DNA of 64,000 nucleotides from Utricularia gibba (lineage: Eukaryota; Plantae; Magnoliophyta), in the NCBI GenBank assembly GCA_002189035.1, contig NEEC01000008.1, positions 3,162,001 to 3,226,000 of the forward strand, written 5' to 3'. How positions within the stretch are numbered: the first letter of the stretch is position 1; every line of letters starts with the position of its first letter. Under the pieces are notes generated by a model. The model saw only the letters and a list, made by a program, of their open reading frames with translations. It was not told the DNA's origin and did no database searches. The position numbers were made by a program, and so were the translations under genes. Positions 24,831-43,864 of the stretch are shown here, piece by piece.

Positions 24831-25231
24831 GTAATGGGAGTTTGATAGCGTCGGTCAACTTTGGTCAAAATCATTGAACTAGTCAAGTTTCGTCTCTCTC
24901 ATGCAGGAAGGGTTCTTTTTGATGGTTTTCTAACACTGTTCCTGAGTTGCACTGTTGAACTACAGCTTCGGGTTGCCTGTTTTCTTACAATCGTTTTGCT
25001 TTGTGTCATCTGTCGTTAGTTTTTGTATATGGGCATGAAAACAATGGCATCTGCACAGTAACCATAAATGGTTAGGCAATCGAAAACGATAAAGCTCTTA
25101 CTTTTCTTTCAAGCTGCAGCACAGACACAGTCACACAGAGGAGCCCCATGACTGTACGGACAAGGTACAAGGGAAAAAAAAGGCACCAAGATTCCTTAAG
25201 GATTGCCCTTCTTTAGTCACACTCATAACCA

Positions 25232-26081
25232 CTACATGACACGTCCATTTTCCATGCTTTCTGGGAAGAAACACAGAGTTTTCGGCACCGTCCTCCTCGG
25301 AGCCGCCTCCCGGAGTCTTCTCCCGGCGGTCTCCCGCTGGCAGTTGAAGAAGACGGCCGCCACCGGGAGACCCAGGTCGTTGTCGGCGGCGAAGCGGCGC
25401 GTGCAGAACCCGTCCCTAGAAACCGGTATGCTTTTCACCGACTGCCGGGCCCTCTGCCTGAACAAAATGAATACGAACCGGTGTATCCCTATCGCCGGCT
25501 TAGGCTTCTCGTAGCCCACCATCGTCTTCCCTGCAAAACTAGTTCTAATTTTACACCTGAAAAGCGCAAATTCACACCATGTCATGTGACTCACCAAATG
25601 TAGCATTTGTTGTCCCTGGAATGTCGGTCACTAACCTGAAACGCCATTAGCATTCAGTAGGAAAGAAACAAAACAAAAAAAAAACAAACATATGAGAAGT
25701 TAGGGTTTCTTTCTCAAGCATCACACCAATGGAGTTTCTCCCTGAGATAAGGGTCACTTGGGCCAGGAACATCTGGATCTAACATGACCTAACATCACAG
25801 TACAAAGAAAAACAAACCCAAATTCAAACATGAAAAACCAAGAAGAATAAAAGATAAAAAAAAAAAAAATTCTATGTCATATGAGTTACTAAGGTGTAGA
25901 AGGTTCTCATGTCGCCGGCGTCGATCTCCACACGGGGGCGATGCCCAACTTCGGCAGGACGGAACTCCGAGCAGTTGACAACGTGCCTGTTGGAGTAGGA
26001 AATGTAGATTTTGCAAGTGGGGGTGAAGGAGTCCAGAACATCTCCCACAACCCTGCTGATCACAAGAGAGTCATAAGACAT
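25232..26081 (-). CDS. TFL1: PEBP family, TFL1/CEN-type floral repressor homolog (divergent), 4 exons
   Basis: Exons 26081-25890, 25788-25727 (62 nt), a 41-nt exon 3, and exon 4: the canonical PEBP layout. Motifs [41 protein letters not shown], segment-B Asp (SRDGF), [21 protein letters not shown] box at about 26158-26166. Confidence 0.9.
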
Positions 26082-26540
26082 TTCTGCAAACAGGTGACGC
26101 AACAGAGAAGGAGGTGCAGGAAGTGATTGGGCAGAAAACTCGTGGATGGGGGGCAGCTTTATATAGACTGGATGAAGAAGGCAATCGTGTATTAATCCAT
26201 TTAACACAGGGATCATCTTTACATACGCAATTAGAGTGATAAGATCTCCTACTTTTGCACTTAACCTCATTGCGGTTCTAAGTTTTGCCCTTCGCTCCAG
26301 TTTTCTGCTTTCAATTTATAATCGTAATTTTGCAAGTATATAGAAATAACCAAAGCAATGAAATAAATTGTTTTTAGAAAACAACAAAAATTGATTATTC
26401 TATACTTTTAAAAAATAAGAAAATTTGAAGACTTGCAACATGAAAACATAGCGAAAGTTATGTGTTGGGATGTCCTCCAACAGTCAAAATAAAATGAGAC
26501 ACAATAGAAATCTAAAAATACAATCATTTTTCTAAAATAA

Positions 26541-26735
26541 AAATCTAAACCCTAAACCTAAAGTCTAAACCCTAAATAAGTTGCAAAACTCTTAGTAATG
26601 AATATGTCACATGAGGTTCATGCATTATCACATTAGCATCACTGCTTCTACGATTGTATTTAAGTGGATACTAGGAAAAACTGAAAAAAAAAGAGATACG
26701 AAGCACTACTATTTATGTTACCTAAACCCTAAATC
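26541..26735. repeat. Degenerate telomere-like (CCCTAAA/TTTAGGG) motifs
   Basis: AAATCTAAACCCTAAACCTAAAGTCTAAACCCTAAA at 26541-26576 and CCTAAACCCTAAATC at about 26721. Confidence 0.7.
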
Positions 26736-42337: not shown

Positions 42338-43864
42338 CTAGCTCTCCATTGTATCATGCTCTTCATCACTTAGATCAAGATCTGCGAGCAGCTCCTCCAA
42401 TGGAACGGAAGGAACATCGTCCACATCACTACCAGACGCCACCTCTGTTGGCTGATACTCTGTATTCGAATACAGGGAAAGACCAAATCGTAGATCCGGG
42501 TTTTCCTCCAAGTCTCTGCAGAACTGCTCGTACTCTGAGTTCATCTTCTCGTCACCATCTTTACCTTTTGCAGAACTGTCGACTTCCATGGGCAGTGACT
42601 TCAGCTTCCAAGAGCGAGGCTTGCCATGCCTCTTTTGGCGCTTCTCCTCATAGCTCTTTTTAATCAATATTACATCAGGGAGAAAACGGCCCTTGTAGTT
42701 GTCCATTTCAATATCATTGCTATTGGCACCATATAAATCATAACCAAGAGCATAATCCCCAGGATTCAGAAGATGCCCCAGATGTGTCCTCACATCAAAT
42801 TTTATGTCATTCCTCCCAAAATCCGATACACGAGCTACCTGGGCATCAGCAAGACGGTACCTCAGACCACCAATGCTTACTTCAGATGAAACTGGTTCCA
42901 CATCCAAAACTATGTATTCAACAAGCTGTCGGCTTGACAGCAATGGCTTAAATGAGAATCTCCAGTACTGATCAGCATCTAAGTAGCTCTGCCTAAGTGT
43001 AAATGGATCCAGCAAAGCAATATTGTTGGTCACTTTGCTACACACTACAAGTGGACCGAGGTTCCCCAAAGCAGTGGAAACTCTGTTGGGAAGGAAAATC
43101 AAATCTTCACGGCAGATAGGGCTGATTTCAACTGAAAATGTGTACTTGTAATTGAAATGGTTGCTCTTTGGATCATGAGACACTAGTTTCTTATCATCAC
43201 GGCTCCTTATAGGAGTTACCTTTCTCAAGAACTCAATAAACTTCACACCATGGCTCCGATTATTGAAAAAGAAGTCAATTCCCTCATCCATTTGCTTAAT
43301 CCTGATAGCATGCTTTGCAGCATCGTGCTTTAGAATAAGCTGCTCCAGGTAGAAGAAAGTGCGCCTGTGTGAAACATGCTGACGAAGTTGCACTGCTGCA
43401 ACCCATTGATCAGGATTAGCTTGGACCCTGGAACACGACTCACATAATTGATCTTTTACTATATATTCAACGATATAAACATCTTCAAGAACTACTTTGT
43501 AAACTTCTTTTTGTACCCAAAGCTTGACTTTAATCCTCTTGGAGTGAGGTTCAGTCCAAATGAATTTTGCATCAACCACACGAACCTTGCTCAAGTCCTT
43601 CAACCGCTTCACACAGAAGTCCAACAGCACATTTGACTCTAACTGAGCTTTGATCCATGTTCTCGGTGGTTGCAAATAGCTTTCACAATCTTGGCAATGG
43701 TAAATGGTAACTATCTTCTGAAGGCCGTCTGTTATGTTATGCTCAGATCTTAAGCAATTTACACACATATTTGCAGCATTCGGTTGCATCGTAATGCCAC
43801 ACTTGCAACATAAGACGGTGCCCATGGTTTGTGGCACATAAAACATACCCGTGCTTTGCTCCAT
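42338..43864 (-). CDS. NMD3: 60S ribosomal export protein NMD3, intronless CDS with probable 5'UTR intron
   Basis: VLCCKCG...PNAANMCVNCLRS, CQDCESYLQPP, FIWTEPHSKRIKVKL, WVAAVQLRQHVSHRRTFFYLEQLILKH, PICREDL; acidic C-terminus with DLEENPDLR. Confidence 0.97.
   Translation of the reverse strand: MEQSTGMFYVPQTMGTVLCCKCGITMQPNAANMCVNCLRSEHNITDGLQKIVTIYHCQDCESYLQPPRTWIKAQLESNVLLDFCVKRLKDLSKVRVVDAKFIWTEPHSKRIKVKLWVQKEVYKVVLEDVYIVEYIVKDQLCESCSRVQANPDQWVAAVQLRQHVSHRRTFFYLEQLILKHDAAKHAIRIKQMDEGIDFFFNNRSHGVKFIEFLRKVTPIRSRDDKKLVSHDPKSNHFNYKYTFSVEISPICREDLIFLPNRVSTALGNLGPLVVCSKVTNNIALLDPFTLRQSYLDADQYWRFSFKPLLSSRQLVEYIVLDVEPVSSEVSIGGLRYRLADAQVARVSDFGRNDIKFDVRTHLGHLLNPGDYALGYDLYGANSNDIEMDNYKGRFLPDVILIKKSYEEKRQKRHGKPRSWKLKSLPMEVDSSAKGKDGDEKMNSEYEQFCRDLEENPDLRFGLSLYSNTEYQPTEVASGSDVDDVPSVPLEELLADLDLSDEEHDTMES

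Follow-up and report, generated by a model that had tools for sequence, protein, structure and literature searches.

On the minus strand of the 64-kb stretch of Utricularia gibba DNA analysed here (the window) lies a PEBP gene that codes for a lysine, Lys82, at the site that is His88 in TFL1 and Tyr85 in FT. Lys82 is confirmed as a real, rare and selectively maintained variant in a generally fast-evolving genome. The gene probably encodes a working TFL1-like repressor with Lys standing in for His at the switch site, a reading to which we give a probability of roughly 0.55; nothing yet shows a new function that this protein might have acquired. In the FT/TFL1 family the His/Tyr site is the textbook example of a single residue that decides between repressor and activator activity, and in the accepted structural account the external loop owes its shape to a hydrogen bond between His88 and Asp144. 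A lysine that occurs naturally at this site and is kept by selection offers a ready test of this account. Should TFL1 activity be supported by Lys82, a hydrogen-bond donor or a positive charge facing the Asp is what matters, and not the His itself; otherwise the lineage possesses a new kind of PEBP regulator.

The gene has GT/AG borders at all three of its introns, which are 64-101 bp long and AT-rich with long T runs. Searched back against the window by tblastn, the model matched at 100% and was the single PEBP copy within the 64 kb. Plant FT/TFL1 genes usually have four exons, with an exon 2 of 62 bp and an exon 3 of 41 bp, and the same four-exon layout with these two exon lengths was found in 6/6 Lamiales orthologues. 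Minus-strand translation reproduced exactly the positions that the initial annotation had given for exon 2 and the AAA codon, and its reading of NGHE replaced by NCSE in exon 1 was seen as well; the frame and splice sites, described there as intact, belong to a complete open reading frame. At the 3' end the canonical stop is lost and the frame continues into an extension that first repeats the usual end motif.

Table 1. Coordinates in the window of the PEBP gene, its key codons, nearby sequence motifs and a neighbouring gene.
Feature	Position	Strand	Remarks
PEBP gene	26081-25232	-	4 exons, 197-aa product
Exon 1	25890-26081	-	192 bp, 64 codons; ATG at 26081-26079
NCSE	25976-25965	-	Exon 1, residues 36-39; NGHE in relatives
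Exon 2	25727-25788	-	62 bp; W codon finished by the first base of exon 3
Lys82 codon AAA	25735-25737	-	Aligns with TFL1 His88 / FT Tyr85
Exon 3	25595-25635	-	41 bp
Exon 4, coding part	25232-25530	-	Includes stop at 25234-25232; GIHR, TFL1-type segment B, C-terminal part
Asp138 codon GAC	25412-25414	-	Equivalent of TFL1 Asp144, from alignments
C-terminal extension	25235-25315	-	27 codons, past the family's usual ...RETAARRR end
Fourth telo-box, AAACCCTAA	25700-25708	-	Intron 2
Possible TATA box, TATATAAA	26158-26165	-	77-84 bp 5' of the ATG; putative, read from the sequence only
Telo-box motifs, AAACCCTAA	26547-26555, 26567-26575, 26724-26732	+	470-650 bp upstream of the ATG
NMD3 (60S export adaptor) gene	42341-43864	-	Neighbour; single exon

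The reality of the Lys codon was examined in independent sequence data. Five DNA runs carrying one species label contain at least part of the stretch, and the contigs of four runs were compared with the window over 25100-26300. The contigs of run X1, probably the source sample of the assembly, covered the whole interval with zero differences, and those of run X4 covered exon 4 alone, also with zero differences. Run X3, which comes from another sample and another study (~40x word depth, ~97% identical), covered 25100-26271, where it departs from the window by 27 single-base differences and a 5-bp insertion; the Lys codon contains none of them. The codon therefore reads AAA, and not CAC or CAT, in the contigs of both X1 and X3. 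A sequencing or assembly error at this codon has a practically negligible probability, since at the contig level the identical AAA was obtained from different samples and studies, and since His to Lys (CAY to AAR) takes two base changes; the earlier argument that a single-base error was unlikely agrees with this codon count and with the presence of AAA in two genotypes. Asn (AAY) would be a possible one-step intermediate on the way from His to Lys. The insertion in X3 consists of 5 bp of A at 25855, in a T/A run of intron 1. The divergence of X3 rises sharply just 5' of 26271 (26271-26300 and further upstream), in the promoter region.

For the occurrence of Lys at the switch site, PEBP sequences were placed on one reference alignment and the switch column was read; the sample was drawn from the best 120-150 matches per search and is not a census. 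Among the 270 PEBPs in the matches listed, the column held His in 134, Tyr in 83, Trp in 33 and other residues in 20, with Lys in 0, so that the variant is not widespread in this sample, wide occurrence being one possible objection that the initial annotation had raised. The 101 TFL1/CEN-type exon 4 matches had 97 His, 2 Tyr and 2 Asn at this site, and His was present in 17/17 other members of the Lamiales TFL1-type clade described below; that Lys is tolerated here cannot, then, be taken for granted. The 110 representatives of 50%-identity clusters, from an exhaustive search, carried His (32), Tyr (34), Trp (31), Phe (7), Leu (3) and Val, Ile or Arg (1 each), and a further 59 PEBP sequences carried His (5), Tyr (47), Leu (4), Trp (2) and Pro (1). 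The sole basic residue among the 270 was the Arg of a protein from the green alga Micractinium (P0359, YRERLHW); this PEBP is only distantly related and falls outside the FT/TFL1 clade, and it also differs from the present case in having Arg rather than Lys. His was replaced in 4/101 of the repressor clade, by Tyr in Olea CEN-like 4 (P0056) and Cucurbita CEN-like 1 (P0243), although both are in that clade, and by Asn in Phragmites CEN-like 1 (P0066) and Primulina CEN-like (P0092); none of the four has Lys and none is close to the window gene. Full-text literature searches returned no paper with the REKLHW string, none joining His88, TFL1 and Lys, no PEBP paper under H88K, Y85K and similar names, and none on Utricularia PEBP genes. 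When metagenome contigs were scanned with a degenerate DNA pattern coding for D-P-[YF]-L-x-E-K-L-H, two chance matches came up, neither of them a PEBP gene.

This rarity, together with the two base changes required, favours an alternative in which Lys82, perhaps with the extension, alters binding at the pocket mouth or the seating of segment B and makes the protein a modified regulator. Such a change might take the form of binding to an anionic lipid head group or a phosphorylated partner, of a repressor that acts more strongly, more weakly or on other targets, or of a sub-functionalised copy beside a His paralogue. Lys is longer than His and always charged, and it lies at the mouth of an anion-binding pocket, so ligand or partner binding may change; the unusual companions of Lys82, namely the extension, NCSE and E101T, point in the same direction. 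We hold this functional shift to be possible but on the unlikely side, for reasons that come from the family placement, the selection analysis and the conserved residues.

Exon 4 alone matched the solved structures of CEN, TFL1, FT and Hd3a at 2.7e-25 to 1.2e-14, with values of 2.7e-25 for CEN (1qou), 7.3e-24 for TFL1 (1wko) and ~1e-16 for FT, and it matched PF01161-annotated proteins at 1e-22 to 1e-27. The exon 1 and exon 4 pieces, too short when submitted singly, returned no family in Pfam hmmscan; the PEBP pocket motifs DPDVP (exon 2) and GIHR (exon 4) are both present. A word-indexed search with exon 4 matched 364 PEBPs with top identities of 73-77%, none of the matches extending into the C-terminal extension (coverage ~72%, at most 81%), and the search with exon 1 gave a best match of 62% identity and no orthologue with NCSE among the matches listed. 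With these top identities there is therefore no close orthologue in the searched collections. In a tree of 53 rows, the window protein was nested in a Lamiales-only TFL1-type clade (support 97/82) that includes Abeliophyllum TFL1, Striga TFL1, Salvia TFL1, Sesamum CEN-like 2 and Buddleja, with the FT-type proteins in a separate clade (100/99) and the MFT-type proteins as outgroup (100/98). Its terminal branch was 0.57 against a median of 0.12, about five times longer. The alternative placement in the sister CEN/SP-type clade was not rejected by the AU test (p=0.40); with FT and MFT set apart, membership of the TFL1/CEN subfamily is secure, but the finer placement is not.

The residues that separate the subfamilies agree with this placement. 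Compared with Arabidopsis TERMINAL FLOWER 1 (1wko) and Antirrhinum CENTRORADIALIS (1qou), the window protein is alike in its four exons, DPDxP, GIHR, the Asp of SRD (D138 in SRDGF, the equivalent of Asp144) and a DND/END-type triad; it differs by Lys for His88, NCSE for NGHE, Thr for the Glu of FGKE, the 27-residue C-terminal extension and the long branch. With FLOWERING LOCUS T and Hd3a (1wkp, 6igg, 3axy) it shares the fold family, the exon structure and the 14-3-3 contact residues, but it has neither Tyr85 nor Gln140 nor an FT-type segment B (YAPGWRQ), and it falls outside the FT clade. In place of the Trp of MFT it has Lys.

Selection on the gene was measured between the two genotypes. The coding sequences of X3 and the window differ at 10 positions, 8 synonymous and 2 non-synonymous (L67V and T166A), which gives a dS of 0.060, a dN of 0.0044 and an omega of 0.074 (138 synonymous and 453 non-synonymous sites). 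Under neutrality the chance of at most 2 non-synonymous changes among 10 is P=0.00025. Divergence was 2.9% in non-coding sequence and 1.7% in coding sequence, and the extension had zero differences. From the 8:2 synonymous excess and the low omega, purifying selection is acting on the gene now, and the neutral dN/dS against which the gene was to be checked is not what was found. Lys, being common to both genotypes, is older than the genotype split; its conservation in both under strong purifying selection can also be read in favour of a functional shift.

To analyse the long branch, a Goldman-Yang type branch codon model was fitted in which the window branch had its own omega. The fit used 169 gap-free codons, was made on each of three topologies and included orthologue coding sequences from Sesamum, Buddleja, Abeliophyllum, Rehmannia, Erythranthe and Fraxinus (all Lamiales). 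Omega was 0.064-0.071 on the window branch and 0.12 on the other branches, a difference that is not significant (likelihood-ratio test, p = 0.11-0.20). The window branch had a dN of ~0.185, against 0.016-0.056 in the other terminal branches, and a dS of ~2.6-2.8, against 0.13-0.46. The GC3 of the PEBP coding sequence was 0.69, compared with 0.32-0.54 in the six Lamiales orthologues, which is a strong compositional shift in the lineage; dS being saturated and GC3 shifted, in violation of the model, the branch omega is a rough value. The synonymous branch is as inflated as the protein branch or more, and the long branch therefore reflects a lineage-wide rate acceleration, with neither relaxed nor positive selection on the PEBP gene. 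The genome is fast at all sites and no result here indicates adaptive change in the gene; the lack of a non-synonymous excess on the window branch argues against a functional shift.

At columns at least 95% conserved among 89 relatives, the window protein departs at 5/79 (G37C, S43A, H82K, E101T and R171L), the median being 1. About 28% of its residues differ from the nearest relative. With 74/79 of the conserved columns retained while ~28% of the residues were replaced overall, the conserved sites are thus still strongly protected, and the loss of one named conserved column in such a lineage is unusual, not extraordinary. Five altered columns are accordingly unremarkable here, which again weakens the case for a functional shift. 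The same five departures, set against the median of 1, and the loss of the canonical stop with its 27-residue read-on could suggest instead that TFL1 activity is lost and the gene is drifting, with changes at the switch site, at the stop codon and at conserved residues of exon 1. The RNA-labelled run, which gave no contig over 25100-26300, might be added on that side, though it is uninformative on expression. Drift of this kind is very improbable given the omega of 0.07 between genotypes (P=0.00025) and of 0.06-0.07 on the long branch, the intact frame and splice sites, and the conserved columns that are kept.

The other determinants of the TFL1 type and the partner-contact residues are all retained, which also speaks against a functional shift. 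In FT numbering, from the alignment, R62, T66, P94, T96, F101 and R130 are kept, which we take to be 14-3-3 contacts from Hd3a/14-3-3 structure work, as are the second His of LHW, E109, D144 and N152. Both segment B and the DND triad resemble those of TFL1, and the loop has zero FT-specific residues. The second His of LHW corresponds to FT His87, which is reported to pack against Tyr85. In 7/17 Lamiales TFL1-type proteins (P0015, P0077, P0432, P0094, P0421, P0008 and P0009) this His is replaced by Gln, Leu or Met; the window protein retains it. Tyr85/Gln140 and His88/Asp144 have been described as critical pairs (PMC3276106; PMC9556947), with His88 bonding to Asp144 in TFL1 (PMC9556947) and Glu109 hydrogen-bonding to Tyr85 in FT (PMC6854094). 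E101T was considered as a loss of FT Glu109 and rejected, as counting places the change at Glu104 and the equivalent of Glu109, E106, is retained. The partner Asp of segment B, which the initial annotation had reported as kept, is indeed present as D138, so that a contact between Lys82 and this Asp may be possible.

Its overall interpretation stood in part: Lys82 is a real and rare variant, and the gene is intact, evolves under purifying selection and retains the Asp. The proposal of neo- or sub-functionalisation found no support, with an omega of 0.06-0.07 against a background of 0.12, the TFL1-type determinants in place and the synonymous rate equally inflated.

For the working repressor that we favour, the following course of events can be proposed. 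The change from His to Lys would be one of many replacements fixed in a lineage whose synonymous and non-synonymous rates were raised several-fold above those of its relatives, with purifying selection as strong through the acceleration as in the orthologues. At the entrance to the anion-binding pocket, Lys82 would serve as a positively charged hydrogen-bond donor, and its contact with Asp138 of segment B would keep the external loop in a conformation of the TFL1 type. The protein would then still be a repressor, dependent on FD and 14-3-3, which it would bind as before, and competing with FT; this activity we infer from the sequence. More speculatively, and in our view rather doubtful, Lys82 and the tail might re-tune the anion-binding pocket, for example towards tighter binding of an anionic phospholipid or a phosphorylated partner. 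The switch would then have a third natural state in addition to His (repressor) and Tyr (activator), and this in a plant whose shoot architecture is highly unusual.

Some further observations concern the surroundings of the gene and the sequences retrieved with it. Telo-boxes are plant promoter elements linked to Polycomb recruitment, and the 64-kb window contains 10 of them against 0.91 expected, a number reached in 0/100 shuffles; four of the 10 cluster at the PEBP gene. The protein of the neighbouring NMD3 gene is at most 80% identical to database proteins, with Sesamum as the best match; its tree places it as sister to Genlisea aurea (SH-aLRT 97), a joining of two branches each 2x the median length that may be a long-branch artefact. 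Taken with the short introns of the PEBP gene, this placement suggests a genome of the Lentibulariaceae, probably Utricularia, and the long NMD3 branch is in line with a general acceleration of the lineage. Three single-exon neighbours had no exact match in the collection searched. The top exon 4 match (P0001, on L001) was considered as a relative with tiny introns and rejected, as it groups with monocot CEN, reads REHLHW and has no flanking genes in common with the window. The locus itself (L001:5492-6243, plus strand; ENA ERZ26165887, a metagenome-type accession of 566 kb) holds a complete CEN gene of monocot type, whose introns measure only 66-86 bp, and its source is likely a small-genome aquatic monocot in the sampled material.
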